A DNA stretch of 64,000 nt, from the sequence record MW825358.1; one strand, written 5' to 3'. This document shows positions 20,604 to 52,729 of the stretch, piece by piece. Numbering within the stretch: the stretch's first letter is position 1; each line of letters opens with the position of its first letter. Below the pieces are notes generated by a model. The model was given only the letters and a program-made list of their open reading frames with translations, had not been told where the DNA came from and searched no databases. A program made the position numbers and the translations under genes.

Positions 20604-20637
20604 GCATAACCCCCACCCTTCGGGGTGGGGTTTATGG
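20604..20637. terminator. CATA-hairpin-TATG element
   Basis: gcataa-cccccaccc-ttcg-gggtgggg-tttatgg. Confidence 0.65.
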
Positions 20638-20679: not shown

Positions 20680-23600
20680 GTGTCTCAAATTCCATCTGAT
20701 GTATTGCAATATCTACTCGATGAGTTAAACGAACGCCAAGGGTTAGCACTGACCAAGGCCGACGTCACATTGAGTAGCCCGGCCGCTTATGCGGGAGGGG
20801 TTCGAAACACGGAAGTACGACTGACTGCGGCCACGAACAGTGGCGCTGCGCTCACCGTCTTGATTCATTACACTCGTCTGGACCTTGAGGTCCTGTTTGA
20901 CGAGCTGTCATTGACCTTTGAAGATTTCGGAGCCACCTCCACGCATGGACTGCTGCAGACCCTTGGGGATCTGCGCGGGGTGACGTTGGACCCGGCTGAG
21001 TTTATCGACTCACCTATCGAGCGTCCAGAAGATGCCGATACCTTGCTGGTGACCTTACAGCCACGCCCTGGGTCTTTGACCTTTACAGGCAGCTTACCGG
21101 TCACCTTGAACCTGTTCCCCTCCAATACGGTACCTCTGGCTTCGCTGATCGATCCGGTCAGTCCCAAGCTCATTGCCACCGCAGGGGTCAGTACTACTCA
21201 GGAGCTGGCTGCCTGGCTCAACACCACGTACGATTTGAATATCGAAGTGGCTGAGATTCAAAATGAACCCCTGGTGTCTAGCTACACCGAAGGCTATAAC
21301 CACCAGGTGACCCTGGCGGCCAAGGCCGGTTCTAAGTTCTACACCGGCGATGCTGATGTGACTTACCGCGAAGGCTATCAGTTGATTCGTGGTGTGACCT
21401 TGATTCCCTCCACCGGTGCCTCAGCTTATTCCACTGTTCCGCAGACCCGTTTCCAAGGTTCCACAAGTCGGGGTGTGGAAAACGTCAATACCAATACCGG
21501 TAAGACGGACGTGGTGGTTTCACTGGAGCAACTGAGTGAATCTTTGCCCTTGTGCGAAACCGTTTCGGTGGTAATTGCCTGGTTTGGCGATGATCAGCGC
21601 GCTGGTGTGTGCACGATCACACCACGTCTGGGCGTACAAGGGACAGAGAACCTGACCTTGCGCTATGAACCTGATGACTGGTCAGTGGCCGGTGTCACCC
21701 CTGCCAATGCGCTCAAGACCTCGGTGGTAGCTGGTTCGAACGTCTATGGCTCAACCCCTTCTGATGCTTCGATCATTCAGGTGATCCAACATCTGAAGTC
21801 GCTGGGCAAGCGGGTGGTGTTCTATCCGTTCTTGATGATGGATATCCAGTCCAACAACACCAAGCCCAATCCTTACTGGGATGGGTATCAGTCACCCAAC
21901 GTCTGGCGTGGCCGCGTTTCGTGCTACCCCGCACCGGGTGTGACCATCAAGGGTGTAAGCTCCCCTGATGGAACTGCCGAAGCTGGCAATCAGATTGATA
22001 CCTTCTTCAACAGCGAGTGGGGCTTTAAGCGCTATATCAACCACTATCGGGATCTGTGCGTCCAGGCCGGTGGTGTGGATGCGTTCTTGATTGGCTCTGA
22101 GATGATTGGTATTACGCACGTGCGTAGTGCGGCCAACACCTTTGCCGCAGCTGCCCACTTGAAGGAGCTGGCCGCAGGTGTTAAGGCGGCGATGCCCAAC
22201 TGTAAGGTCTCCTATGCCGCAGACTGGTCTGAGTACCATTCCAAGCAGTACAGCAATGGTGATCTGAAGTTCCCGCTGGATGAGGTGTGGGCTGATCCGA
22301 ACATCGACTTTATCGGCATTGACAATTACTTGCCCATCGCAGATTGCCGAGCCGATCAGGATCCTGCCCTGTGTCATGACATTGACTACCTGAAGAGTCA
22401 CATCGAAGGGGGCGAGTACTACGACTACTACTACATCGACCGGACCGCCGGTACGACTGGTGCGATCACCGATGGTGGGGGTAAACCGTGGGTGTATCGT
22501 CAAAAGGACATCCGTGGTTGGTGGAGTAATCGCCACTACCCGCGCAATGCCTATAATGAAACCAGCACTCCCACGGCGTGGCTGGCCGGCTCCAAGCCGG
22601 TATGGTTTACTGAGTTTGGTTGTGCGGCAGTGGACCGTGGTCCTAACCAGCCTAACGTGTTTTTAGATCCGAAGTCCTTTGAATCTGCTCTGCCTTACTT
22701 TTCCACCGGTGAGGTGGACATGCTGGCACAGCAGGCCTATATCACCGCGATGGTGGAATACTGGACCGAGCACGGCGGGGCGATGATCTCACCTGAGAAC
22801 ATGATTGCCTGGACCTGGGATGCACGACCCTTCCCGCAGTTCCCGCAACTCACCACCGTGTGGGGCGATGGCGGGAACTATCTGGGTGGTCACTGGGTGC
22901 AAGGGCGTTTGCCCGATTCCATTCCGGTGATGACCATTGCCGCAGGCAGTGACGGGGTGGCCGGTAGTCCGGTGAACTACACCTTGACTTTGGATAAGCC
23001 TTCGCTGATTGATCTGATTGTCAATCTGGGTTATGGCGGCACGGCAGTGTCGGGTACGGATTTCACCCCGCGTACGACTGTGACCGTTCCAGCAGGGCAG
23101 ACCAGCTTTAACTTCACTATCGCCACGATCGATACCGGTTTTGGTGAGGATGTCCACACCTTGCGTGTGTCAGTGGTTAAGGGCTTTGGTTACAAGTTGG
23201 GTGTGCCCAAAGATGCCACCTTGTCCATTACCGATAAGCCCTGGCCAGAAGTTCCGCCTGTCCCGTCAATCACCTTGGTGGGCGTGGGTGGTAACCGTAA
23301 CGAGAATGCCGGTACCAAGCAGTTCACGATTGTGCTCTCTGAGCGCACCACGATTGATCTGGTGGTCCCGATTGCCTATAACACCGGTGCTGCGGTTAGC
23401 TCGACCTATGGTGATGACTACACAGGTCCTGCCACCGTCACCGTGCCGGCCAATACGTTGCAGCAGAACTTCAACGTGTCCATCGTCGATGACAATATCT
23501 ACGAAGGGAATGAATCGGCACGCACCACCATCCAGGCAGGTACTGGGTACACGTTAGGTAGTACGGTCTCGGTGGTCTGGACGATTCTGGACAACGATGC

Positions 23601-26600
23601 CAAGCCGACCATGACCATTGCCAAGTTGAGTGATGGTACAGAAGGTAGCACGGGTCCTGGCTTTAGACTGACGGCCAACCGTCTGTCCAAGACCGCCACT
23701 AATGTGATCTTGGCTTACAGCGGTACAGCCACGGCAGGTACGGACTATACGGCACAAACCACAGTCACCTTGCCGGCTATGGCCAACAACGTGGACTTCT
23801 ACCTCTCGGTAGTGGATGACATGGTCAATGAAGGCAATGAGACCGTCATTGTCACGATCCAGCCGGATAATGCCTACACCGTGGGCGGTATGTCAAGTGC
23901 CACAGCCACGATCATTGATCGACACATCAATCCGAAGATTACGATCGCAGCTGCGGCTGCGCAGGTCACCGAAGGCGGTACGTTGAATGTCCGTATCAGT
24001 GCCGATCGTGCTCCGACCTCGGATCTGACTGTACAGCTGCAGTACGGCGGCACTGCGGTGCGGGGAACCGACTACACGCTCAGTTCTTCCACACCAACGG
24101 CAATGGTCCTACCAGCTGGCAGTACTACGTTGGATTTCACCATCACTGCCACGGCAGATCAGCTGGTGGAGCCAGAAGAGTCCATCGTCATCACAGTCGT
24201 CTCGGCCTCCGGTTACGACGTGGGTGATCCGGCTAGTACCACGATCCGCTTGCTGGATAATGATGGTACACCGACCGTCTCCATTGCGCGTAGCGGGCAG
24301 GAGAATGTCAATGAAGGTGACCGTGTAAACTTCACAGTAAGCACCACTAAGGCTTGGTCTACGGCGCGGCAGGTCAACCTGACCTTTGCAGGTACGGCCA
24401 CCAAGGGGACAGACTACACCTTGGTCAATGACTACGTCACAATCCCGGCAGGTCAAACCAGTGTTCAGGCGTATGTGGATATCGTCGATGACACGGCGGT
24501 GGAAGCAGATGAGACAATCATCTTGGGCATTGCGACCAATGCGGCCTACACGGTCAGTTCCACCAATGGCTCGATTCAGTACACGATCCTCAATACCGAT
24601 TCCTACCAGCGTCCGGTGGCTTCAATCACCAACCTCAGTAGCCAGTCGGTGGATGAGTCTCGCACTGAACCGCTGACCATGACGGTGGGCATTGGCTCTG
24701 TCCAAGGCACGGATACGACGGTCTATATCGCCTACAGTGGCACAGCGACTAAGGGTACCGATTACACGGCACCTGATTCGGTGGTGGTCCCGGCAGGACA
24801 GATCTCTGTCACTGCACAGATCCAGATCATCAACGATACGACCTACGAGTCCAGCGAGACGATCATCATCAATGTTCAGGCCAACGCCGCATATGACATT
24901 GCAGGTTCGCAAACGCCCATCACGATCACGATCGTGGATGATGACGGTCCTACGCAGGCGACCTTCAGTAGCTCCACGTATAAGGCGCCCACGCAGACCT
25001 TGTCTGACTCGAACCGTCGCACGACAGCCAACACCGATGTGGCAGGCTTTGTCTTGACAGACACTGTCAAGCGCACTGGTAAGTACTACGTAGAGTTGAC
25101 GTATATGGCCCAAGCCACAACCTCCTCCACCTCGTGTGCGGCAGGTATTGTGGTGGGTGCACCGGTGAATCTGACAGCTTACCTGGGCTCGCACAGCAAC
25201 GCCTACGGTACCTGGGCAGAAGGTACGGGTATCGACCGTCGTTGTAGCTACAACAACGCCTCGGCGACCAATGCCACCACAGGCAACGGTGCCCCGGCGG
25301 TGGGTCAGGTCTTCCGTATTGCGGTGGACATCGACGCCGGTCGAGTGTGGTTGGGTCGCTTGGGTAGTTCGGCTTGGTTAGGCGGTGGTGATCCTGCCAC
25401 TAACACCAGTCCGACCTACACCTTCACACCTAACTCAGTGGTGCGCTTTGGTGCTAACCCGCGTGGTGTGGACGGTTCGGTCTCGATTCGCGCCTACAAC
25501 GCATGGGTGTATGCGGCACCGGCAGGTTTTGGTATCTGGGACAATGTCTCGCAAGAGAATTGGCCGCGTGTGTCTACGGTCAACTACGGTTCGGTCCAGG
25601 AAGGCAATCCGATGACCTTCCAGCTGACGCTGGACAAGGCTGCTGCCGCAGACTTGCCGGTGAACTTGAGTTACGGTGGCACGGCAGTGAGGGGTACAGA
25701 TTACACCGCACCGACCTCACGCACTGTCACGGCAGGTAACTTGACCCAGCAATGGTCCATCAATACAGTCCCAGACAACAGCGCCTCCACCAACAAGACC
25801 TTGACTGTGACGGTCAACCCCGGCCCTGGTTACATCGTCGGTTCGCCGGCCACCGGTTCAGGTACGATCACCAACAACGCTGCGGAAAATCCGTTTGTCA
25901 ACACGGTGGCTCCGGCAGTGTCGGGTAATACGACCCCAGGCAGTACGTTGACAGTGTCTAACGGTACTTGGACAGGCGGTACGATCACCAGCTACGGGTA
26001 TGAGTGGTACCGCAATGGTTTCTTAACTGCGGTGAAAACACAGACCTACGTGATCGCTGCTAATGACGATATCGATACGGAGTTCTTCGCTCGGGTCTAT
26101 GCGAAGAGCGCTCGTCAGAACGTCCCGGCACAGTCTAACACGGTCAAGGTGACCGCACCGCCGGCTTCACTGCCGATGACGGCCACCTTTGTGGGCGCTG
26201 ACAACACGGATGTGACCACTCACGACTCGCGTCTGTCGTATATGGGCGATGTCTCCCCGATCTCGCTGATTATCGAGAATAATCAGATGGCCCCGGGTAA
26301 TGATGTCGGCGGTGCACAGTGTGTCTTCTTCAACAATGCGAAGATGACCCAAGGTGCACGCTCGTCTAAGATCACCATCGGTGGGACGGACAACAGCAGC
26401 TTCTTCTTGATCACGCTGATGACCGATGGCACGATGAGCCGTTACATCCAGTGGTATGGTACCAGCGGCTTTGCGGCGATCTACTGCCGCACCGGTGGTG
26501 AGGAAATGGAAGTGCCCAGCTCGGCACACTACCCGACCATTGTGGCCGGTGACGTGCTGGAGTTGAGTATCAATGCGGCCAATGATCAGCTGACCTTTAA

Positions 26601-26745
26601 GGTCAATGACGTGGTGGCTTGGACTGGTGCAATTCCGTCTAATATGGTTCCGGTGGGCGAGTACAGTGGCGCTGGTTACTACAGCGCTTCTCCGTACGAA
26701 GCTGCTCGAATTGTGGACATCACCATTAACGGTACGTTGAAGTAA
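20680..26745 (+). CDS. giant virion fibre/appendage protein: anchor domain + GTA-type TIM barrel + Calx-beta repeats + SPRY + Ig + lectin-like
   Basis: N-terminal domain shared with 26824 and the 49-52 kb paralogs; GTA TIM motifs (GSTPSDAS, YPFLMMD, FLIGSEM, YAADWSEY, IGIDNYLP, WFTEFGC, PNVFLDPKS.ES); ~7 GTDYT-type Calx-beta units; GKYYVEL SPRY motif. Confidence 0.85.
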   Translation: MSQIPSDVLQYLLDELNERQGLALTKADVTLSSPAAYAGGVRNTEVRLTAATNSGAALTVLIHYTRLDLEVLFDELSLTFEDFGATSTHGLLQTLGDLRGVTLDPAEFIDSPIERPEDADTLLVTLQPRPGSLTFTGSLPVTLNLFPSNTVPLASLIDPVSPKLIATAGVSTTQELAAWLNTTYDLNIEVAEIQNEPLVSSYTEGYNHQVTLAAKAGSKFYTGDADVTYREGYQLIRGVTLIPSTGASAYSTVPQTRFQGSTSRGVENVNTNTGKTDVVVSLEQLSESLPLCETVSVVIAWFGDDQRAGVCTITPRLGVQGTENLTLRYEPDDWSVAGVTPANALKTSVVAGSNVYGSTPSDASIIQVIQHLKSLGKRVVFYPFLMMDIQSNNTKPNPYWDGYQSPNVWRGRVSCYPAPGVTIKGVSSPDGTAEAGNQIDTFFNSEWGFKRYINHYRDLCVQAGGVDAFLIGSEMIGITHVRSAANTFAAAAHLKELAAGVKAAMPNCKVSYAADWSEYHSKQYSNGDLKFPLDEVWADPNIDFIGIDNYLPIADCRADQDPALCHDIDYLKSHIEGGEYYDYYYIDRTAGTTGAITDGGGKPWVYRQKDIRGWWSNRHYPRNAYNETSTPTAWLAGSKPVWFTEFGCAAVDRGPNQPNVFLDPKSFESALPYFSTGEVDMLAQQAYITAMVEYWTEHGGAMISPENMIAWTWDARPFPQFPQLTTVWGDGGNYLGGHWVQGRLPDSIPVMTIAAGSDGVAGSPVNYTLTLDKPSLIDLIVNLGYGGTAVSGTDFTPRTTVTVPAGQTSFNFTIATIDTGFGEDVHTLRVSVVKGFGYKLGVPKDATLSITDKPWPEVPPVPSITLVGVGGNRNENAGTKQFTIVLSERTTIDLVVPIAYNTGAAVSSTYGDDYTGPATVTVPANTLQQNFNVSIVDDNIYEGNESARTTIQAGTGYTLGSTVSVVWTILDNDAKPTMTIAKLSDGTEGSTGPGFRLTANRLSKTATNVILAYSGTATAGTDYTAQTTVTLPAMANNVDFYLSVVDDMVNEGNETVIVTIQPDNAYTVGGMSSATATIIDRHINPKITIAAAAAQVTEGGTLNVRISADRAPTSDLTVQLQYGGTAVRGTDYTLSSSTPTAMVLPAGSTTLDFTITATADQLVEPEESIVITVVSASGYDVGDPASTTIRLLDNDGTPTVSIARSGQENVNEGDRVNFTVSTTKAWSTARQVNLTFAGTATKGTDYTLVNDYVTIPAGQTSVQAYVDIVDDTAVEADETIILGIATNAAYTVSSTNGSIQYTILNTDSYQRPVASITNLSSQSVDESRTEPLTMTVGIGSVQGTDTTVYIAYSGTATKGTDYTAPDSVVVPAGQISVTAQIQIINDTTYESSETIIINVQANAAYDIAGSQTPITITIVDDDGPTQATFSSSTYKAPTQTLSDSNRRTTANTDVAGFVLTDTVKRTGKYYVELTYMAQATTSSTSCAAGIVVGAPVNLTAYLGSHSNAYGTWAEGTGIDRRCSYNNASATNATTGNGAPAVGQVFRIAVDIDAGRVWLGRLGSSAWLGGGDPATNTSPTYTFTPNSVVRFGANPRGVDGSVSIRAYNAWVYAAPAGFGIWDNVSQENWPRVSTVNYGSVQEGNPMTFQLTLDKAAAADLPVNLSYGGTAVRGTDYTAPTSRTVTAGNLTQQWSINTVPDNSASTNKTLTVTVNPGPGYIVGSPATGSGTITNNAAENPFVNTVAPAVSGNTTPGSTLTVSNGTWTGGTITSYGYEWYRNGFLTAVKTQTYVIAANDDIDTEFFARVYAKSARQNVPAQSNTVKVTAPPASLPMTATFVGADNTDVTTHDSRLSYMGDVSPISLIIENNQMAPGNDVGGAQCVFFNNAKMTQGARSSKITIGGTDNSSFFLITLMTDGTMSRYIQWYGTSGFAAIYCRTGGEEMEVPSSAHYPTIVAGDVLELSINAANDQLTFKVNDVVAWTGAIPSNMVPVGEYSGAGYYSASPYEAARIVDITINGTLK

Positions 26746-26748
26746 CAG

Positions 26749-26786
26749 AACAGAGCCCCTCCGAAAGGAGGGGCTCTGTTTTATGG
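26749..26786 (+). terminator. hairpin-TATG element after the 2021-aa gene
   Basis: aacagagcccctcc-gaaa-ggaggggctctgtt-ttatgg. Confidence 0.7.
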
Positions 26787-26823: not shown

Positions 26824-27336
26824 GTGTCTAACCTACCATCTGATGTGATACAGACTTTGTTGGACGGGATCAACCGCGAGTGTGCCTTGAGCCTGACCAA
26901 AGATCAGGTGGTGTTTGGCACACCCGAGCCTTCCACCCAACAAGGTCGTAATACCAAAGTCCGGGTTGAAGCTGCCTCGGTACATCTTGTCATCTCAGCT
27001 TACTACTACCGTTTGGAACTGTCGAGGTTGCTGAGCGATATCAGCAGGACCTTTCCAGATGAAGGCCAGGCCAATACTCTGGATTTAATTCCTCAGATTG
27101 CGGCCCGTCGTCAATTGAGTTTCAATGTTGATGACTTTGTTTCCACTCCGATCGAGCGTACCGAAGGTCAGCCCACGTTGGTGACCCTACAAGCCCGCGC
27201 GGATTCTTTGACGTTGTTAGGTGCAGTCGAGATTACGCTGGGCGCAGTTAACACGGTTCCTGATAATGCTTTGCTGACACGAGAAGGCGACCCCATCTAT
27301 ACGCGGGAAGGCGACTTCCTATTTGTTTCGGAGTGA
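26824..27336 (+). CDS. stand-alone anchor/adaptor protein (paralog family)
   Basis: AGGAG SD, GTG start; same domain as the N-terminus of 20680; ends LLTREGDPIYTREGDFLFVSE. Confidence 0.8.
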   Translation: MSNLPSDVIQTLLDGINRECALSLTKDQVVFGTPEPSTQQGRNTKVRVEAASVHLVISAYYYRLELSRLLSDISRTFPDEGQANTLDLIPQIAARRQLSFNVDDFVSTPIERTEGQPTLVTLQARADSLTLLGAVEITLGAVNTVPDNALLTREGDPIYTREGDFLFVSE

Positions 27337-27339
27337 TGT

Positions 27340-30300
27340 ATGCCACACGTACACGAGCTACCGTCTGTTTCACCCCAGACCGTAGCCGATTTGCGCAATG
27401 TCACAGGGATTGTGCTGCTGGAGCAAACCGTACAGCAAGTACAAACGGATTTGGGTGAAGCCCAGGATCTGGCCCAAGCAGCATCAACTGCTGCCTCTAC
27501 GGCCACCACTACGGCTAACACCGCCAAGACCACGGCCGATACGGCCAAGACCACCGCTGATACCGCAGCCGGCAATGCCAGTACTGCTTTACAAGCTGCC
27601 AACGTAGCGGTTGCCGCAGCTGCTGAGGCCAGCACTGCGGTGGAGGAGGCTCAAGATCAGATCGATACTGCTGTGGCCGATGCAGCAACAGCTAAGACCT
27701 TGGCGACCTCAGCCAATACGGCGGCCAGCGCTGCTGACACCAAAGCCACCAATGCAGGCACAGCTGCCAGTAATGCGCAGACCACAGCCACTGCAGCGCA
27801 GACCGCAGCAGGTAACGCACAGACGGCGGCCAACACTGCTCAAGCAAAGGCCGATGCTGCCGATACCAAGGCCAATAACCTGCGTACCGATTTGGATTCT
27901 CTGACCGATACGGTCCAGGCGATCCAAGATCAGATCGGTGGTGTCAACCAAGTCCCGGTGGCCACACCCATCACCATTGATGTGGATGAGGACACAGTCA
28001 ACTACCAAGGTAGCGTGTTCGACCACGTAGTGGACCCTGACGGTGATGACATGGTGGTGGTGGAATCCACCTACAACAGCACCAAGTTCAATGCCGGCAC
28101 CCAGTTCAATACTGTCTACGGCACGATGCTGGTGGCAGTCAACGGTAACTACACTTTCACCCCCAACGCCACCGCGCAAGCTTTGAATGACGGAGAGACC
28201 GGTACGGTTGCCTTTGCCATTCTCGTGCGTGATGCCCGCGGTGGTACGGCGACGTGGAACCTCACCATTCGTGTGATCGGTTCAACGGATGAGGCCGGCG
28301 GTGGAGATGATGATAACACCACCTTTGATGCCCTGTATGACCCCAGCTTCAAACTGATTGAAAATCAGAACTTCTACTCGCGCCCGACAATGTCCAAGCC
28401 GAGTAAGATGACCAGCTACACACAGCCGAGCTATACCGATCCGGTGTTTGGAACCAAGATCTTTGGTCTGACCCGCGTCAATGATACCTCGGACAATATC
28501 ACCAACTTGCGCCACGTCTATTCGCGTCAAACGGCGATCAATGCCGATAACACGCGCTCGATCGTGCGTGCCGGTAACGGTTGGTGGCATTTGTATAACC
28601 TGCAAACCGGTCAGCGTATTTTGGGTGGACGTACCCAAACGCCAGGCTTTGGTGCGCTGGTGGATTTCATCAACGAATGCGAATGCGTCTGGCATCCGAC
28701 CAACCCCAAGAAGCTGTGGCGTACCGGTAACCAAGGTGCGGGGTGCATCTGGTATGAATACGACATCGATACGATGACCACCACGGTCCTGTTTGACCTC
28801 AACCCGCTGCTGCAAGCGCTGGGTGGGGCTTGGGCCAATGCTGGGCGTGCCTGGTTCAAGGGCGAAGGTCGTCCTTCGAACGATGGTCGCTGGTGGGGCT
28901 TCCAGGTGGAAACGGCCAGCTATGGAATGATCGGCTTGATCATGTACGATCGCCAGACCAACACCATCGTCGGCAGTGCACTGACCACCAACCGTCCCGA
29001 CCACGTTTCAACCTCACCGCTGGGTAACTATATCGTGCCATCTTGGTACGGTGGTACGACCGAAACGCTGGCGTCCTCGGCCACCCGTCCGATGAATGAA
29101 GCCAACGGTGCACGTGCTTACTCGCGTGACTTCTCTTCCTTTACGCAGCTGTCCTCGTTGGGTGAGCACTCAGACTTGGCCATCGATGCGCAAGGTAATG
29201 AAGTGTTTGTCTCGGTGTCCTACCGTGGCGGCACCTCAGGTCAAGAACCTGACGTGGCTGACGGTGGCATCTACTATCGCCGGATGGATAACGGTGTGGC
29301 CTACTCGCTGCCGGGTAATGCCTACCAAGACTCCTCTGACGGTGGTGTGCACTTGTCAGGCCTTGCCACCAAGAAGCCTGGTTGGGCGGTGGTATCCTGG
29401 TATGGCGGTACGCCTAAGACGTGGAAGGACGGTGTGGTCTATGCGGTGGAGCTGACCCCGGATAACCCCAAGACCTTACGTATCTGTCACCACCAGACGG
29501 TGGCCCAAGGTGCTGAGGCGTATATCGCCGAATCCCACGCAGTGCCCTCGCCTGATATGTCCATGATCCTGTTTGCCTCCAACTATGGTGGCAGCGTGGT
29601 GGAAGACTACTACGTGGGTCTGCCTTCGTGGGCCTTTGGTGTGGCAGGCGCAGGTCGCCCGCCGGTAAACCAAACCCTGCCGGCAGTCTCAGGACAAGTC
29701 ACCCCCAATGCGGTGTTGACCTGTACGGCGGGCATGTGGTCCGGTGTGGGGATTACCTACAGCTACCAATGGTACCGTGACTCTGGTACGATCATCAGTG
29801 GTCAGACCACCAACAGCTTCACCATCCCTTCAGGGGCAGCGGCAGGTACGCAGTACTACTGCCGTGTGACAGCCACCAATGCCACCGATACGGTTTACGC
29901 TGAGTCCAACAAGATCACCGTGCAGGTTCCTTCTGCGCCGGTCAACACGGCCAAGCCCACCATCACCGGTGGTTCGGCAGTGGGTAGCTTGCTCACAGCG
30001 CAGCCGGGTACGTGGTCGGGTCTGCCGACGCCGGACTTTACCTATGCTTGGTATCGTAACGGGACAGCGCTGGGTGTCACCACGCGCACCTATACGGCCA
30101 ATGATCTGGGTGACTACACGGTCCAAGTCCGGGCCGAGAACACCCAAGGTTTTGCAACGGAGATGTCCACGGTCAAGACGATCGTGGCCGCCGCAGATCC
30201 CAAGGCTGCGGTGGGTTCGCCGGTGAACACCACTAATACATGGCAGTCCTCCGGCAGTATTGCCGTACCGTCAGTGGCAGTGGGTGATTCGATTCTGTTG

Positions 30301-30858
30301 GTGGTGAGCCTGGATGAGGGCAGTGGTGATGGTAACTTGAACTCGATCACGGCCACCGTGCTCGGCAAGCCCTTGAACCTGCTCTACTCCACTCCGTTGA
30401 TCACTCTGTCCTCTGGTCGTATGGTGCGTCAGCACTACTACGTGGCAGATAAGGTGACCGCGGCCGGTACAGCCACGATCAATGTGACCTTTGAGGCCAA
30501 CACGCATTACGCTATGCAGGCCCAGCGCTTCACCGGTGGTATTGCCACGGTGGATGTCACAGCGCCGGGTGGCTTTAATGCCACAGCGTTTGCCACACCA
30601 CATCCGACCGGTACGGTCAGTGCGACCATCGCCAACTCCGTTGAGGTCATCAGCTTGGTCGGCGCCACGGACATGTCCAATGCGGCATTGACTTTGCCCT
30701 CTGGCTTTACCTCGATGGGTGCAGACAACGTGGGTCCGTTGGTGGCGATCACTGGCTATCGCGTGCGCACCACAATCGGCAACATCGGCGGTACGATTAC
30801 CTCGATGAATGGCGGTTATGGTTCGGGCTGGGCAGCTTCTGCCTTGAACTTGTACTAA
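27340..30858 (+). CDS. fibre protein: Ala/Thr coiled coil + VCBS/cadherin-like Ig + propeller-like domain + Ig repeats
   Basis: A/T-rich heptads, GTMLVAVNGNYTFTP (VCBS-like), Trp-rich ~440-aa domain, two PVN..P..SG..LT...G.WSG..Y.WYR Ig-like repeats. Confidence 0.75.
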   Translation: MPHVHELPSVSPQTVADLRNVTGIVLLEQTVQQVQTDLGEAQDLAQAASTAASTATTTANTAKTTADTAKTTADTAAGNASTALQAANVAVAAAAEASTAVEEAQDQIDTAVADAATAKTLATSANTAASAADTKATNAGTAASNAQTTATAAQTAAGNAQTAANTAQAKADAADTKANNLRTDLDSLTDTVQAIQDQIGGVNQVPVATPITIDVDEDTVNYQGSVFDHVVDPDGDDMVVVESTYNSTKFNAGTQFNTVYGTMLVAVNGNYTFTPNATAQALNDGETGTVAFAILVRDARGGTATWNLTIRVIGSTDEAGGGDDDNTTFDALYDPSFKLIENQNFYSRPTMSKPSKMTSYTQPSYTDPVFGTKIFGLTRVNDTSDNITNLRHVYSRQTAINADNTRSIVRAGNGWWHLYNLQTGQRILGGRTQTPGFGALVDFINECECVWHPTNPKKLWRTGNQGAGCIWYEYDIDTMTTTVLFDLNPLLQALGGAWANAGRAWFKGEGRPSNDGRWWGFQVETASYGMIGLIMYDRQTNTIVGSALTTNRPDHVSTSPLGNYIVPSWYGGTTETLASSATRPMNEANGARAYSRDFSSFTQLSSLGEHSDLAIDAQGNEVFVSVSYRGGTSGQEPDVADGGIYYRRMDNGVAYSLPGNAYQDSSDGGVHLSGLATKKPGWAVVSWYGGTPKTWKDGVVYAVELTPDNPKTLRICHHQTVAQGAEAYIAESHAVPSPDMSMILFASNYGGSVVEDYYVGLPSWAFGVAGAGRPPVNQTLPAVSGQVTPNAVLTCTAGMWSGVGITYSYQWYRDSGTIISGQTTNSFTIPSGAAAGTQYYCRVTATNATDTVYAESNKITVQVPSAPVNTAKPTITGGSAVGSLLTAQPGTWSGLPTPDFTYAWYRNGTALGVTTRTYTANDLGDYTVQVRAENTQGFATEMSTVKTIVAAADPKAAVGSPVNTTNTWQSSGSIAVPSVAVGDSILLVVSLDEGSGDGNLNSITATVLGKPLNLLYSTPLITLSSGRMVRQHYYVADKVTAAGTATINVTFEANTHYAMQAQRFTGGIATVDVTAPGGFNATAFATPHPTGTVSATIANSVEVISLVGATDMSNAALTLPSGFTSMGADNVGPLVAITGYRVRTTIGNIGGTITSMNGGYGSGWAASALNLY

Positions 30859-30891
30859 GCATATTGCCCCTGCTTCGGCAGGGGCTTTATG
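30859..30891. terminator. CATA-hairpin-TATG element
   Basis: gcatatt-gcccctgc-ttcg-gcaggggc-tttatg. Confidence 0.65.
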
Positions 30892-30991: not shown

Positions 30992-33121
30992 ATGACTGCA
31001 TATGAACGTGGCGTTGCCCTGTCAGGAATGGAGAATCGAAGCTCCACGCTGCCAGGCAAAGCCAACACCGACTACCTGGTGCCACGCGAAAAGGATTTTG
31101 CGTATTTCTCAAGCAAGGGATTTACTCTGATTCGACTGGCGATCACCTGGGAGCGCATGCAGCCTTCGCTCTTTGGCCCGTTGGACCCGGCCTTTAAGAA
31201 GCACGTTGATGCGTGTATCGAATTGGCCAAAAAGTACAACATGCGCATCTTGCTCGAACCGCATAACTACGGCGGGCGACGCGTCAACGGGGTCGGATAC
31301 AAGATCGGCACTCCGCAAGTGACGGTAGAGGCCTTTGCCGATTTCTGGGGGAAGGTGGCCATGGCCTACTCAGATGAGGAAGGCATCTACGGCTATGACC
31401 TGATGAATGAGCCACACACCATGCCAGTGGGCTGTACGCCGCTGACCTACCATCCCTCCAAGTTTGACTACATCACCAATCCGCGCTTTGAAGATGGAAA
31501 GTCCGGTTGGAGTATGGACAGCGTCTTTAAGATCGGCGATCAATGCGCCGAGTTTGACATCACTGGAGGTTGGGCCAATCTGACCTCGTACAATGCCAAG
31601 GGTGGCGGTATCCCGGTCGTGCCGGGGGCGACAGTGACCATCGAGTTTGACTACGAGTTGGAGATCACCTCAGGAAACGGTCCGCGCTTTCGCATTAGCT
31701 ACGGTGATAATGCCGCCTACGGAACGGAGATCTCAGGCACAGGTAAGACCTTAGGCAAAACCGTGGGCAAGGCCACCCACAAGGTCACCTTTACCGTGCC
31801 AGATAAAGCTGACATGGTCTGGCTGCGTTTCCAGAACCAGGGCGGTAATGTCAAGGGTAAGGTGTCTAATTTCCGCTACAGTGCCAGCTCCCTACCCAAG
31901 CGCCAGGTCGCCACCACCACCTTGATGAACCAAGCGGCCATTGACGCCATTCGCGCTGTGGATTTGAAGCATTGGATTGTGTTGGAGTTTGACCGTTACA
32001 CCGGCCTGGCTTCTTTCGGTGCCAACTTTGGTACGAACCCGGAAGTGTGGTGGTCTGATCCGGTCAACAAGACCATGCCTTCGTTCCACTACTACCAAGA
32101 CAGTGATTACAGCGGCTCTTACACCAAGGCTTGGACGCAAGGGTTGCGCGATCGCATGGAAGCTCAAGTGCGGTTGGTGTTTGACTGGGCCAAGCGTAAC
32201 AAGGTGACGGTGTTTATGGGCGAGTACGGCGTGCCTAACACTGAGGACAGTTCAGGCGAGAACTACCGCCAAGATCTGGATGCGTTTTTGACGCTGATGG
32301 ATGAGTACGCCATTCCGGGTACGTACTGGTCCGCAGGCTGGGGTTATACCTCACCGACTACGATCCACCCCACCGAGAACTATACTGTCGATCGCAAGGT
32401 TTTGGCCACGGTCCTGAAGCATCTGGGAAAGAAGGACACCCCGCCCACACCACAGCCGATTCCCTATGACCCGGAAACTGATCCGGCACTGTGGAAGGTG
32501 GATGATCTGGTGCGCCTGTCCTTTGGTGCTTCGTATAAGCGCCCAGAGGCCAATGCCAATGCATTCGTTTTTGAATGCAAGAACGTCAAGGTAGGCGATG
32601 TCCTCTCGCCCAACCTTAAGTGCACCCAAGGTCAGTTGATCGGGGCACGTTTGTCAATGGCTTCGATCTCTCTGCCGTATCGTAACTTTGCCTCTGGCAA
32701 GAACGGTCCGAATGATCGTCACCTTCCGCCGCATGCCTTGGGCGAGGAGACACGTGAGTTCTGGTATGGTAAGGGTAGCGTGCCGATGATCTTCCGGTTG
32801 GACAATGTTCCACCTGGGGTCTATGAGGTGGTCGTGGGTGGCGCTGCCCCCAGTACGGGTGTTTCAGATCTGTTCAAGGCCACGGTGAGCTTCCCGGCCG
32901 GGAAAGGAACAGGCGGTGTGTATGATGCCGATGGAGCCAAACCTGCCGGCAGTGATCAATGGTATTTCATCAGCAGTGACGTTGAACCTGTCAATGGTAT
33001 CTTGGACGTTAGTGTCGTGGCCGCCGTGGCAGGCGGACAGGCGTGTGTGAGTTTCATCACCCTGCGGCGCTTAAGTGCTCCGGTGCAGTATGAGACCTAT
33101 TTGCGGGAATTAGCAGCATAA
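30992..33121 (+). CDS. GH5 endoglucanase with inserted CBM4/9-like module and C-terminal beta-sandwich
   Basis: IRLAITWERMQP, EPHNY, YDLMNEP (acid/base Glu), HYY, GEYG (nucleophile Glu), YWSAG; insert YITNPRFEDGKSGW. Confidence 0.85.
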   Translation: MTAYERGVALSGMENRSSTLPGKANTDYLVPREKDFAYFSSKGFTLIRLAITWERMQPSLFGPLDPAFKKHVDACIELAKKYNMRILLEPHNYGGRRVNGVGYKIGTPQVTVEAFADFWGKVAMAYSDEEGIYGYDLMNEPHTMPVGCTPLTYHPSKFDYITNPRFEDGKSGWSMDSVFKIGDQCAEFDITGGWANLTSYNAKGGGIPVVPGATVTIEFDYELEITSGNGPRFRISYGDNAAYGTEISGTGKTLGKTVGKATHKVTFTVPDKADMVWLRFQNQGGNVKGKVSNFRYSASSLPKRQVATTTLMNQAAIDAIRAVDLKHWIVLEFDRYTGLASFGANFGTNPEVWWSDPVNKTMPSFHYYQDSDYSGSYTKAWTQGLRDRMEAQVRLVFDWAKRNKVTVFMGEYGVPNTEDSSGENYRQDLDAFLTLMDEYAIPGTYWSAGWGYTSPTTIHPTENYTVDRKVLATVLKHLGKKDTPPTPQPIPYDPETDPALWKVDDLVRLSFGASYKRPEANANAFVFECKNVKVGDVLSPNLKCTQGQLIGARLSMASISLPYRNFASGKNGPNDRHLPPHALGEETREFWYGKGSVPMIFRLDNVPPGVYEVVVGGAAPSTGVSDLFKATVSFPAGKGTGGVYDADGAKPAGSDQWYFISSDVEPVNGILDVSVVAAVAGGQACVSFITLRRLSAPVQYETYLRELAA

Positions 33122-49234: not shown

Positions 49235-49272
49235 GCATAAGCCCCTCCCCAAACGGGGAGGGGCTGTTATGC
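49235..49272. terminator. bidirectional CATA-hairpin-TATG element between convergent genes
   Basis: gcataa-gcccctcccc-aaac-ggggaggggc-tgttatgc. Confidence 0.7.
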
Positions 49273-49309: not shown

Positions 49310-49813
49310 TTATTGATAAGGATACCCTAAACCCTGAAGGTAAACCGAGGGTTCAGGATCTTCTGGCATATCGGCACTTAAGGTCAATGTCACGCTTCCA
49401 AACAAACCTAAGGAACCAGATTTAGCCGTCAAGGTAAAAGCCGGCTCCTCACCGCTGCGATCGATACTTGAATCTTCCACATCGGCACTGGTGATGTATC
49501 CGCCCAGACGTATGCTGAGTTTAGCAAGTAAGTCATGGACTGAGGTCTCACCGCCATCAGCAAAGATCTTGTTGCGATATTCAAACAGCTTGGTCAGCGA
49601 TAAGCGATTGTAGTTGATGTTCAGCGACAGATCTGTCCCAATGGCCGTCAGTCCCAGGCGGCTATTGCGCTGGGAACTGGTCATGTCGATGATCGATGGA
49701 TTCACCAAAATGGGCGCATCCCAGGTGACATCCGTTTTAGTCAGTGACAAACCCTGTTGGGCATTAATGTCATCCAGCAGGCTTTGCCGGACGTCGAGCA
49801 AATCATTGGACAT
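49310..49813 (-). CDS. virion structural paralog (anchor domain) ending in VYLQGLGYPYQ
   Basis: GGAG SD before ATG 49813; RNS..YNRLSL..SLGLFG family motifs. Confidence 0.8.
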   Translation of the reverse strand: MSNDLLDVRQSLLDDINAQQGLSLTKTDVTWDAPILVNPSIIDMTSSQRNSRLGLTAIGTDLSLNINYNRLSLTKLFEYRNKIFADGGETSVHDLLAKLSIRLGGYITSADVEDSSIDRSGEEPAFTLTAKSGSLGLFGSVTLTLSADMPEDPEPSVYLQGLGYPYQ

Positions 49814-49985
49814 TTCTGCTCCAAGGTAATTGTTGTAAATCTCATAGGATACCGATGGCGCCATAAGCCCGGGACTTCGGTCCCGGGCATGGCGAGTGCG
49901 CGTTGGTCATCCCATTGGACTCAAAATACAAATGGATTGGTCAATGAATTCGTGCGTCGCGTGCTCGAGTCATTGAATCTCTCCA

Positions 49986-50468
49986 TTAGCCCTCAGGCTC
50001 TCCGCCACTGCTTTCACCGAAGCTGATTTCGATCTCTCCAAAGACATAGAGAGAATCTGGATCTGCTTCCAGTGACATCGGACCTTCCACCACGATCGCA
50101 TCGATGATGTCCTCAGCCACCAAACGGGTGCCCAGGCGTGCATTGATCTGATTCAGCATGGAGCTAAGCATCACCCCATCACCAGGATAGGGAAACTCGG
50201 TGGAACGCAGGTTGAAGAGTTTAGCCATGGACAGGCGGTTGTAAACCACCGTAACGTCCACTGCCGGACCATTGCCATCGGCAGGTCGGGTCAGCTGTAC
50301 GGAAGAATTACGCTTGGCCGGATCACTGAAATCCACCACAGTGGCATCCAGCAAAGCCGGCGGTGCAAAGGTGACCTCATCTGGATCCAGACTCAGACCG
50401 GCCTTGGCATTGGCACGGGCAACCAGGAACTCGGCTACCGATGCTGCGGTATTGATGTCATCGGACAT
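49986..50468 (-). CDS. virion structural paralog (anchor domain)
   Basis: RNSSV..YNRLSM..SLYVFG. Confidence 0.8.
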   Translation of the reverse strand: MSDDINTAASVAEFLVARANAKAGLSLDPDEVTFAPPALLDATVVDFSDPAKRNSSVQLTRPADGNGPAVDVTVVYNRLSMAKLFNLRSTEFPYPGDGVMLSSMLNQINARLGTRLVAEDIIDAIVVEGPMSLEADPDSLYVFGEIEISFGESSGGEPEG

Positions 50469-50557
50469 CTGGGGGTCCTCTTAGGAATTGAAAAGAAATC
50501 AACTGAATGAAAAGTACCCCGGATTGCTCCGGGGTACTGAACACTCAATATTGAGGA

Positions 50558-51049
50558 TTAACCAGCTTCCGGATCGGGCTTGGTCATGGTCATCTCAGCC
50601 GCACCAAACAGCCCCAGCGATTCGGGCTTGGCGGTGAGCACGACCGTATCGGTGGTCGCATTGACCGGCTCCAGGGCCACATCTTCCAGGTCAGAGCCCG
50701 TCAGATCCAGCTTCAGCTTCTCGGCAATTTCCTCGAGCAGGTCGTAGGTGGAAACCTGGGAACCGTCGCCTTCAAGGTCATCACCCATCACGCTCACCAG
50801 CTGCGCCAGCGACAGACGGTTGTAATGCAGGGTGTAGGACACTTCCACCTCATCATCACCCACGGCGGTGATGGCAATGCGCGAGTTGCGCGCAGTGGGG
50901 TTGGTCAGGTCAATCGTATCTTCGTCATACAGCTCAGGCTCGCCGAAGGTCAGCTGGTTCACCGTGTAGACGGTGTCCAGATTCTGAGCGGCCAGCTGCT
51001 CATTGAGCAACTCGGTCAGCTGCTCGGGAAAAGACTTGGGGTTAGACAT
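50558..51049 (-). CDS. virion structural paralog (anchor domain)
   Basis: RNSRI..YNRLSL..TYDLL..SLGLFG. Confidence 0.8.
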   Translation of the reverse strand: MSNPKSFPEQLTELLNEQLAAQNLDTVYTVNQLTFGEPELYDEDTIDLTNPTARNSRIAITAVGDDEVEVSYTLHYNRLSLAQLVSVMGDDLEGDGSQVSTYDLLEEIAEKLKLDLTGSDLEDVALEPVNATTDTVVLTAKPESLGLFGAAEMTMTKPDPEAG

Positions 51050-51078
51050 CTGATGTTCTCACTTTAGAGAGTCAATAC

Positions 51079-51555
51079 TCAAGGACCGCTCAAGGTCAGA
51101 TTGATCTGACCAAACAGCAGCAAGGAGGCAGGATCTGCCACCAGCATTACGGTCAACGGATACGTGCCGCCTTCGATCTGGTGTCCCACAATGTCCTCTT
51201 CCCTTACGGTGAATCCGAACTTGGTGGTCAACACCGGCAACAGGTCGTACGTATGAGTTATATCGCCAGCAATAGTCGTGCTACCGCTTTCAAATAGCCC
51301 CGTCAAAGACAGGCGATTAAACCACAATGTCGTGGCGAACTCATATGGTTCGCCTGGCGCGTTGGTGATTTCCACTTTGCTATTGCGCGAAGGCAATGCA
51401 GGAGGTGCAGGATCGGTAATATCTACCACGGTAGGATCGACTAAGACCGGAACACCAAATGACACACGACTTAGGTCCAGGTGGGTTTTGTACTGAGCAT
51501 TGAGCGCATCGAGCAACTGCTGCTGAGGCGTCAATACAGGATCAGGAACAGGCAT
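51079..51555 (-). CDS. virion structural paralog (anchor domain)
   Basis: RNSKV..FNRLSL..TYDLL..SLLLFG. Confidence 0.8.
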   Translation of the reverse strand: MPVPDPVLTPQQQLLDALNAQYKTHLDLSRVSFGVPVLVDPTVVDITDPAPPALPSRNSKVEITNAPGEPYEFATTLWFNRLSLTGLFESGSTTIAGDITHTYDLLPVLTTKFGFTVREEDIVGHQIEGGTYPLTVMLVADPASLLLFGQINLTLSGP

Positions 51556-51637
51556 AAACGACTCCAGCTAGACAGAGTAAAAACCCTACCCTCCTTTGCA
51601 AGAGGGTAGGGCACGCTGCAACGCGTAGGAAACAGAC

Positions 51638-52729
51638 TTACTCAGCCAGACCCTTGACCTTGGCGGTGAACGCCAGGGTGAGGGTGTTGCTGGCATCGGC
51701 CAGATCCACCGCCTTGAACTCGATCTGGAAATCTCCGTAGGGAGAACCGGCCGGATTCAAGGTCAGCGAACCGAACTTGCGCTTGACGTGGTTGATATAC
51801 AGCACATCGGTGTACAGGCTCTGATCGGCATTGGTGGCCTCTTCGTGATGCTGTTCGATCTGGTTGGCCGTATCGATCAGATAAAGACGACCGAACTTGC
51901 GGGTCAGGGCCAGATTGATCACGCCCCCACCTTGGGCAGCGGTGATCTTCAAGGACACCGCATAGCGATCGGTCAGACGCTTGCTGTTGGTCTTCTTCAG
52001 CAAGGCCGCGCCAAAGGGGATGTTCCACTCGCCTTGATCGGAGATATCCAGCACCACCTCATCATTGCGCGAACCCACCGCGTAGTCCACCTTACCCAGG
52101 CGTGCACCGACAAACAACTCCACCTCACCATTGGAGGCGACAAACAGCTTCTCAGCCGATTGGTTGTTGGCCAGCAGCGTGCCGTGCTCCGGCGAGCGCA
52201 GGATCTGGCTAGGGGTGGCATTGGGAGTGATGACCGGCTCGGTGATGAAGCTATCGTCCACCGCCTTAGCTTCGAGCAGGTCAATGGAGAACTGACCGGT
52301 AAAGCGCAGGGACATCGGGTTGGCCTTGAGCACCACCGCACGTGGGTAGTCGCCCGTGGGAAGGTTGGCCTGGACCAGATCGGTCGACTCAAACACTACA
52401 CGGGCCTCAGTGGCCAGCGGCGCGAGCAGATCGGCCACCGTGGTGTAGTTGTTATTGACAATCTCAATGCTGCGATTGGCAAACAGACGGGCCAGGTCAA
52501 AGCGGTGGTAATGGTACTCCACCGTCACCGGTGTGGGTTGGCCGTCGTCGGGGGTGACGGTGTGGGTCACTTCGATGTCAGTGTTATACTTCTCATCGGC
52601 AGACACACTCGGGGCGCCGATCACGACATCGCTGGCTTCAAAGCTGGTGGCATTAGCGGCGTTGATCAGGTCGACCACAAACTGCTCGCCCGAGGTTGTC
52701 AGGTCAGCGGTCTTGTTGGAATCGGACAT
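51638..52729 (-). CDS. anchor domain + ~210-aa passenger domain
   Basis: YNT..YHRFDL..TVADLL..SLRFTG followed by an unrelated C-terminal region; start 52729 preferred. Confidence 0.8.
   Translation of the reverse strand: MSDSNKTADLTTSGEQFVVDLINAANATSFEASDVVIGAPSVSADEKYNTDIEVTHTVTPDDGQPTPVTVEYHYHRFDLARLFANRSIEIVNNNYTTVADLLAPLATEARVVFESTDLVQANLPTGDYPRAVVLKANPMSLRFTGQFSIDLLEAKAVDDSFITEPVITPNATPSQILRSPEHGTLLANNQSAEKLFVASNGEVELFVGARLGKVDYAVGSRNDEVVLDISDQGEWNIPFGAALLKKTNSKRLTDRYAVSLKITAAQGGGVINLALTRKFGRLYLIDTANQIEQHHEEATNADQSLYTDVLYINHVKRKFGSLTLNPAGSPYGDFQIEFKAVDLADASNTLTLAFTAKVKGLAE

Follow-up and report, generated by a model that had tools for sequence, protein, structure and literature searches.

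DUF7941 modules of Xanthomonas phage LucasX: fused, split and bare members of a putative baseplate-linked appendage

The subject is DUF7941 (Pfam PF25613), a protein module of about 150 residues, and seven genes that carry it in a 64,000-nt stretch (hereafter, the window) of the genome of Xanthomonas phage vB_XciM_LucasX (MW825358.1). Five of them form an array on the minus strand (49310-52729, LUCX_273-277); LUCX_244 and LUCX_245 lie on the plus strand. Published work of 2026 already covers the family and the role proposed for it: a preprint on phage Goslar (bioRxiv 10.64898/2026.04.21.720040) defines DUF7941 as a chimallivirus family. According to this preprint, Goslar encodes ten DUF7941 paralogues, all of which (10/10) were detected in virions by mass spectrometry. 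Copies per virion are given as ~580 for gp22 and ~2140 for gp23; two paralogues are among the most abundant virion proteins. Docking was modelled head to tail with AlphaFold, the linker (and C-terminal domain) of one protomer lying on the N-terminal domain of the next. Purified gp22 gave filaments in negative-stain electron microscopy. Carbohydrate-binding, glycoside-hydrolase or leucine-rich repeat heads are found on three paralogues, and a 'fibre cloud' starting from the peripheral baseplate is proposed by the authors.

Other systems are close in sequence or in principle. phiKZ gp127 belongs to the outer peripheral baseplate, at the end of the band of gp139 dimers (PDB 9XQD; PMC13250141). 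The phiKZ tail fibres gp131-gp135 are paralogues built on the same principle: they share an N-terminal domain as anchor, and their C-termini, the distal heads, vary (PMC13250141). Their anchor is a domain different from DUF7941. Branched tailspike and tail-fibre adaptors (G7C, CBA120) have conserved N-terminal docking modules that bring several enzymatic heads to each attachment site; a Klebsiella jumbo phage with hyperbranched fibres reportedly also has conserved N-terminal docking modules and heads on one attachment site. These three branched systems use gp10-like or other trimeric anchor domains, none of which was found in LucasX proteins.

LucasX is a jumbo myovirus of 305,651 bp that infects Xanthomonas citri (PMC9009655). 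The window corresponds to positions 186001-250000 of the record, and the array is 100% identical to positions 235310-238729. LucasX is a phiKZ-like chimallivirus (Chimalliviridae), since the window encodes a PhiKZ-type major capsid protein (PhiKZ_MCP, E 1e-224) and a divergent DnaB helicase (divDNAB) and since the phage is included in the chimallivirus tree of bioRxiv 10.1101/2024.03.21.585822. In the record, LUCX_273-277 are all annotated as 'hypothetical protein' and LUCX_244 as 'gene transfer agent host specificity protein'. The LucasX genes are new, unannotated members of the family described in the Goslar preprint.

The seven window genes share one module, far beyond what chance could produce. 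Their N-termini align across ~150 residues with ten invariant columns, which bears out the common domain proposed in a preliminary description of the window made from its letters alone. All pairwise BLASTP comparisons are significant (21/21; identity 25-39%). Each protein independently exceeds the gathering score of Pfam DUF7941 (7/7; 43-97 bits, cut-off 27; E 3.8e-11 to 1.9e-27), and each matches PHROG 1037 and 2935 ('virion structural protein'). The module is N-terminal in all seven. The members of the window are listed below (aa, amino acids).

49310-49813, minus strand: LUCX_273, 167 aa, bare module plus a tail of ~20 aa (PF25613 E 1.5e-14)
49986-50468, minus strand: LUCX_274, 160 aa, bare module, 5 aa after it (Pfam E 3.8e-11)
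50558-51049, minus strand: LUCX_275, 163 aa, bare module, 3 aa after it (Pfam E 6.8e-16)
51079-51555, minus strand: LUCX_276, 158 aa, bare module, 2 aa after it (Pfam E 1.9e-18)
51638-52729, minus strand: LUCX_277, 363 aa, module, linker and beta-sandwich (Pfam E 2e-16, aa 10-174)
52265-52729, minus strand: DUF7941 module of LUCX_277 (aa 1-155), with a Foldseek match to 9xqd_0
51650-52162, minus strand: C-terminal all-beta domain of LUCX_277 (aa 190-360), no Pfam family
20680-26745, plus strand: LUCX_244, 2021 aa, module, half-module, GTA_TIM barrel, five Calx-beta repeats and immunoglobulin (Ig)-like C-terminus
20680-21150, plus strand: DUF7941 module of LUCX_244 (aa 1-157; Pfam E 1.9e-27)
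21163-21387, plus strand: truncated second module of LUCX_244 (aa 162-236; Pfam positions 87-158, 36.7 bits)
26824-27336, plus strand: LUCX_245, 170 aa, DUF7941 adaptor (Pfam E 8.3e-18)

An eighth DUF7941 gene was not found in the window by a six-frame scan with a hidden Markov model (HMM) built from the seven. The family is 'seven-member', as first described, only within these limits: when the deposited genome was scanned as is, 17 DUF7941 proteins were found at six loci. The ten further members (LUCX_125, 174-179, 292, 293 and 301) score 43-107 bits, all above the Pfam threshold. Passengers outside the window include an alpha/beta-hydrolase (esterase) in LUCX_176, Calx-beta and LapA-like repeats in LUCX_177 and an Ig domain in LUCX_293. 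A linker-like stretch follows the module in LUCX_277 and LUCX_244 and, outside the window, in LUCX_125, 174 and 176. Beyond LucasX, the profile search returned 2379 clusters (50% identity) at E <= 1e-3 and 757 at E <= 1e-10. The first module begins at most 30 residues from the N-terminus in 145 of the best 152 cluster representatives; 49 of these 152 carry two or three tandem modules, and one family protein of 3796 aa has eleven matched stretches.

The division of the window genes into stand-alone modules and carriers stands as it was first drawn. LUCX_273-276 are bare, and LUCX_245 has nothing beyond its module except an acidic tail; the two genes said to carry passengers, LUCX_277 and LUCX_244, do so. 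In LUCX_244, an N-terminally truncated half-module directly follows the first (1.5 modules in tandem; HMM independent E-value 0.003). Further on, aa 447-722 match positions 1-299 of 299 of the GTA_TIM profile (PF13547, E 8.8e-107), and Calx-beta is matched in five stretches (E 2.4e-33). GTA_TIM is the 'host specificity protein' domain (PF13547, PHROG 4271) of gene transfer agents and phage tails; in LUCX_244 it is present at full length but sits behind DUF7941 and before Calx-beta, not in a siphovirus-type distal tail protein. In LUCX_277, the linker has one predicted strand and leads to a C-terminal domain of ~170 residues that has homologues in eight other protein clusters. This domain was considered as a gp22-type C-terminal domain or as a member of a Pfam family and rejected as both: it has no Pfam hit, and its Foldseek matches are generic Ig-like beta-sandwiches only. 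Profile search provided at least four proteins as relatives of LUCX_277.

The fold of the module is that of the phiKZ baseplate protein. When the profile of the seven was compared with all PDB chains, one relative was returned, phiKZ gp127 in 9XQD (E 4e-7); no similarity to the N-termini of gp131, gp133, gp134 or gp135 was found in this search, PHIKZ127 being the only match. LUCX_277 was modelled with AlphaFold2 from an alignment of 62 sequences (predicted local distance difference test, pLDDT, 91.5; predicted template modelling score, pTM, 0.84). Its N-terminal ~150 residues match 9xqd_0, the N-terminal domain of gp127, in Foldseek (E 1.3e-6, prob 1.0), with a target-normalised TM-score of 0.71 and a root-mean-square deviation of 3.7 Å over 146 aligned columns. 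The other six modules of the window would share this fold by homology, so that the common fold implied by the preliminary description is seen in the model of one member and expected in the rest. Searched against predicted viral structures, the LUCX_277 model has many matches in phiKZ-like phages (Eowyn, PhiEaH1, PhiPA3, RAY, Phabio and others). Identity to gp127 (described with gp126) is 22%, and gp127 differs in its make-up: its 290 aa include a linker and a C-terminal domain.

The interpretation considered probable is that the seven proteins are chimallivirus DUF7941 modules that link to the outer peripheral baseplate and to one another, in flexible chains bearing host-recognition heads, and that they come in three grades. 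The N-terminal module would provide both kinds of attachment. Fused carriers would be LUCX_244 (glycosidase-like GTA_TIM, Calx-beta/Ig repeats) and LUCX_277 (beta-sandwich). The split carrier would be LUCX_245, an adaptor translationally coupled to the fibre LUCX_246, which would dock by a conserved N-terminal peptide. The bare modules LUCX_273-276 would receive a neighbour but donate no linker, and would be ends or spacers of the chains or alternative plugs in the baseplate. The earlier proposal, interchangeable anchor modules that stack in an appendage of the virion and present enzymatic or adhesive heads there, is supported by phiKZ gp127, by the Goslar paralogues and by the LucasX passengers, and it agrees in substance with the model published for Goslar. 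LucasX and Goslar are alike in the Pfam family, the N-terminal position of the module, the clustering of paralogues, the presence of hydrolase, carbohydrate-binding or adhesin passengers in some of them and the chimallivirus background. They differ in number (17 members in LucasX, ten in Goslar) and in the gp22-type C-terminal domain, which has no LucasX counterpart; three LucasX members of the window are without any linker. A separate adaptor gene serving a fibre gene is present in LucasX and is not found described in the available part of the Goslar preprint (10.64898/2026.04.21.720040). Relative to that part, the additions made here are modest: the 17 members, the absent donor elements, the half-module of LUCX_244, the conserved but variable array and the adaptor-cargo cassette.

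Several points weigh against this interpretation. Virion location and chaining of the LucasX proteins are proposed by analogy with relatives; the phiKZ gp127 coordinates are a docked prediction in a 4.4 Å map (PMC13250141), the filament-cloud model of Goslar is itself partly speculative, and no tail fibres are visible in transmission electron micrographs of LucasX (PMC9009655). The category of the matched PHROG families reads 'head and packaging'. Both loci lie amid nucleotide-metabolism and replication genes, outside the main structural blocks. All LucasX matches end by about position 174 of the 276 in Pfam DUF7941; therefore, as judged from the extents of the Pfam matches, a gp22-type C-terminal domain is present in none of the members (0/17). 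LUCX_274-276 keep just 2-5 residues after the module and cannot be chained by the published donor-acceptor mechanism. In the prediction of a natural two-module family protein, both modules are confident and have the same topology; the linker between them has a pLDDT below 50 (residues 167-171) and the pTM is 0.65. The picture suggested by this model is one of beads on a flexible string, and it gives no support to a rigid stack.

Nucleus-forming jumbo phages, a subject of work on biocontrol of Xanthomonas citri and other plant pathogens, may make contact with their hosts mainly through DUF7941 proteins. In the window, eight 'hypothetical protein' annotations, counted as those of the seven DUF7941 genes and of the fibre gene LUCX_246, now give way to one coherent system. 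The 17 proteins, their fused, split and bare grades and the tail-head pair described below raise concrete structural questions about a family for which assembly rules have so far only been modelled.

Another explanation can be given for the bare modules of the array. Since LUCX_274-276 have no linker, they could, under the published donor-acceptor model, accept the linker of a neighbour but not donate one; we infer that they are chain ends, spacers or baseplate plugs. An alternative, unlikely in our view, is that LUCX_273-276 are not filament links at all and are terminators or caps, or decayed carriers that have lost their passengers, with little structural role. It would fit the near absence of residues after the module (about 1-5, no donor linker) and the state of the locus in relatives. 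On two metagenomic contigs of ~317 kb (L013 and L014), an array with the same surroundings begins with an orthologue of LUCX_277 (41% identity), and the modules most like LUCX_274 and LUCX_273 are fused to passengers (proteins of 351, 489 and 926 aa); the closest relative of LUCX_273 in L014 is the 926-aa protein. Against decay, the bare form is conserved, the LUCX_276 orthologue of L013 having the same 158 aa (46% identity); each bare-module gene has an intact open reading frame (ORF) and its own Shine-Dalgarno (SD) sequence, and several have their own terminator; and, among the best cluster representatives, no form is as frequent as the bare module of ~150-180 aa.

The same contigs bear on the idea of a modular kit. 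The array also includes an orthologue of LUCX_275 (39% identity). Capsid protein and helicase genes flank it at one end; at the other end, which is covered by L014 (the L013 contig stops inside the array), there is a convergent dihydrofolate reductase (DHFR) gene. The order 277-276-275-274-273 and the flanks are kept and the passengers differ: a conserved locus and module order with changing heads is what a modular kit predicts. In the phage collection, no close relatives of the array were found besides LucasX itself.

Two side observations concern these loci. A gene for a glycosyltransferase of family 9 (204 aa) lies inside the array of the relatives (L013, 10484-11098; L014, 10479-11093); there is none at this place in LucasX. 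On another contig (L009, 1-13433), the fibre cassette lies in one cluster with other DUF7941 carriers and a convergent DHFR gene and is itself next to the DHFR gene; because these are joined there, both loci of LucasX may go back to a single ancestral cluster beside DHFR.

A second alternative, very unlikely, makes the DUF7941 proteins parts of the capsid, of the inner body or of the packaging machinery instead of a tail appendage. PHROG 1037, 2935 and 3589 are filed in accordance with it, and the distance between the array and the gene of the major capsid protein is 5 kb. The PHROG label is, on the other side, merely the category assigned to 'virion structural protein'. Only phiKZ gp127 has been placed by experiment, and its site is the outer peripheral baseplate; the passengers (glycosidase-like, Calx-beta, Ig and fibre domains) are typical of host-recognition proteins.

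The split grade consists of LUCX_245 and the gene that follows it. Its elements, in addition to LUCX_245 itself, are the following.

27265-27333, plus strand: duplicated acidic tail of LUCX_245, last ~23 aa, NALLTREGDPIYTREGDFLFVSE
27340-30858, plus strand: LUCX_246, fibre-like cargo of 1172 aa, no DUF7941 module; Ig_2 domain
27340-27414, plus strand: N-terminal head peptide of LUCX_246, ~25 aa, MPHVHELPSVSPQTVADLRNVTG

LUCX_246 is matched by PHROG tail-fibre families 4242, 13980 and 13173 (E 3e-13 to 8e-8). The matches start at residue ~18-40 of LUCX_246 but at profile position ~116-190; LUCX_246 is therefore without the N-terminal anchor of ordinary fibres. Its homologues on metagenomic contigs of jumbo-phage size have, each time, a small stand-alone DUF7941 gene immediately upstream, and the same arrangement is found on those contigs with other large adhesin-like genes. 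Adaptor-cargo pairs were assembled from the fibre homologues and from small proteins with a similar tail, giving nine pairs from six independent contigs.

Matched tail and head peptides are present in all nine pairs. The cargo proteins are otherwise unrelated in length (159-1714 aa), and the same head of ~25 residues opens each of them. With MPHVHELPSVSPQTVADLRNVTG as reference, head residues M1, L7, S11, P12 and G23 are identical in 9/9 and L18 in 8/9; conservation fades beyond ~30 residues. In the tail (reference NALLTREGDPIYTREGDFLFVSE), E7, P10 and E15 are identical in 9/9 and A2, T5, G8 and T13 in 8/9. The duplicated acidic motif is C-terminal in eight adaptors and internal in the ninth, which has 353 aa. 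A six-frame scan of the fetched loci (L009, L011 and L013-L017) found no orphan head and no orphan tail, and the only head peptide in the LucasX genome, scanned in the same way, is that of LUCX_246. The head shows no similarity to the module (all scores <=0.3 bits), and its motif was not found inside fused family members. A search with the adaptor alignment returned nothing in viral contigs and nothing in metagenome contigs.

The junction itself was described at first as an in-frame abutment of the 26824 gene and the 1172-aa fibre. This is literally true (TGA, one codon, then ATG) but is not conserved: six of the nine pairs are in frame and three are out of frame, and the in-frame abutment in LucasX is incidental. 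That LUCX_245 and LUCX_246 are one gene, expressed by read-through of TGA or split by a sequencing error, is accordingly hard to credit. The two ORFs are indeed in frame with only a stop and one codon between them, and there are other family members that have module and passenger in one protein. The same split recurs, though, with mixed stops (TGA, TAG and TAA), with gaps of 1-4 nt in 7/9 pairs and of 30 nt in 2/9, with a GGAG-type ribosome-binding site within the last codons of the adaptor and with an ATG and SD sequence proper to each cargo; among 38 homologues, a fusion of PF25613 with a fibre was not found. A read-through fusion was rejected on these grounds.

The simplest reading is a cassette of adaptor and cargo, coupled in translation, with LUCX_245 lending its DUF7941 anchor to LUCX_246 in trans. 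We infer that the head of LUCX_246 most likely docks non-covalently on LUCX_245. A broader proposal is put forward tentatively, its chances being a little short of even: a docking code, in which acidic-tailed adaptors would specifically capture separate cargo of any size through the head and linker-less modules would set the chain ends, the 17 paralogues then making the most elaborate appendage of this kind described. If such a code exists, fibres could be exchanged as two-gene cassettes with the baseplate left untouched.

Two further observations concern this locus. Common Ig-like segments (33-37% identity) are found in LUCX_244 (aa ~1690-1830) and LUCX_246 (aa ~720-960); they are also present in capsid-decoration or whisker proteins of Stenotrophomonas phages. 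The gene next after LUCX_246, LUCX_247 (30992-33121, plus strand, 709 aa), encodes a domain of the GH5 cellulase type (E 3.8e-38), and its product has neither a DUF7941 module nor a head peptide. LUCX_247 may be a further polysaccharide-degrading virion protein of the locus.

That the family works within the host during infection, opposing its defences for instance, and has no place in the particle, as suggested by the position of both loci amid DHFR, ribonucleotide reductase and helicase genes, is barely tenable against the detection of 10/10 paralogues in Goslar virions (two among the most abundant proteins) and the building of gp127 into the phiKZ baseplate.

The limits of the family deserve a remark. 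LUCX_174 (record 153136-153648) has a weak Pfam match to Spiralin (best E 0.001, below the cut-off). Spiralin is the only secondary family to recur, with weak matches in 4/62 aligned family members. DUF7941 has been reported in Spaid-like surface proteins of Spiroplasma (PMC13375240, 2026); because of this presence, its exclusivity to chimalliviruses may fail, and a remote link to spiralin is possible.

The last elements to be described are the hairpins, many of which are accompanied by TATG (hairpin-TATG). Those of the two loci are given below.

51579-51612, minus strand: intrinsic-terminator hairpin after LUCX_277, 13-bp stem, then T run
50510-50538, minus strand: intrinsic-terminator hairpin after LUCX_275, 11-bp stem, then T run
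49862-49888, minus strand: hairpin-TATG between LUCX_274 and LUCX_273
49240-49265, both strands: bidirectional hairpin with TATG on both sides, between LUCX_273 and the convergent DHFR gene
20610-20636, plus strand: hairpin-TATG upstream of LUCX_244
26752-26785, plus strand: hairpin-TATG between LUCX_244 and LUCX_245, annotated as terminator
30866-30891: hairpin-TATG element, a further example in the window

To judge from their positions, the hairpins split the array into at least four transcription units. They also bear on the start of LUCX_273. Its longest ORF starts at 49864 (extra stretch 49814-49864, minus strand), with an ATG that belongs to the hairpin-TATG element; the true start is most likely the annotated one, 49813, because a GGAG Shine-Dalgarno sequence precedes it and the resulting N-terminus agrees with those of the paralogues. 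A scan for sigma-70 promoters (1 found, 2.6 expected) is uninformative, and irrelevant for a phage with its own RNA polymerases.

Late promoters of phiKZ have the consensus TATG, the G being the first transcribed base; the motif is necessary, not sufficient, and frequent in the genome (PMC4666361). The preliminary description had attributed TATG late-type signals to both loci. TATG is indeed present upstream of LUCX_244, 245, 273 and 277, but at these genes, as genome-wide, it directly follows a GC-rich hairpin (107 sites under one set of criteria). In a control on 111 perfect hairpins, 68 (61%) are accompanied by TATG at a distance of up to 8 nt on one side or both, 33 of them on both; it is by far the commonest 4-mer flanking hairpins (101/222 flanks, ~1% expected), with the extended preference TATG-C-Y-G-Y-Y after the hairpin. 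The element also occurs at convergent gene ends with nothing downstream, and it coincides with annotated terminators. Pairs of the form TATG-N(1-12)-TATG are not enriched in the window (8, with 10.5 expected), and no TATG lies within 110 nt upstream of the major capsid and sheath genes. Because TATG is tied to hairpins genome-wide, also where nothing follows, its reading as a signal specific for late expression was rejected: beside a hairpin, TATG alone does not mark a late promoter in the LucasX genome. Conserved terminator motifs have been reported in phiKZ and 201phi2-1 (PMC11512511). Since TATG is the motif of late promoters and start sites in phiKZ, the hairpin-TATG element may signal termination to the phage RNA polymerase, may join a terminator to a promoter, or may do both.

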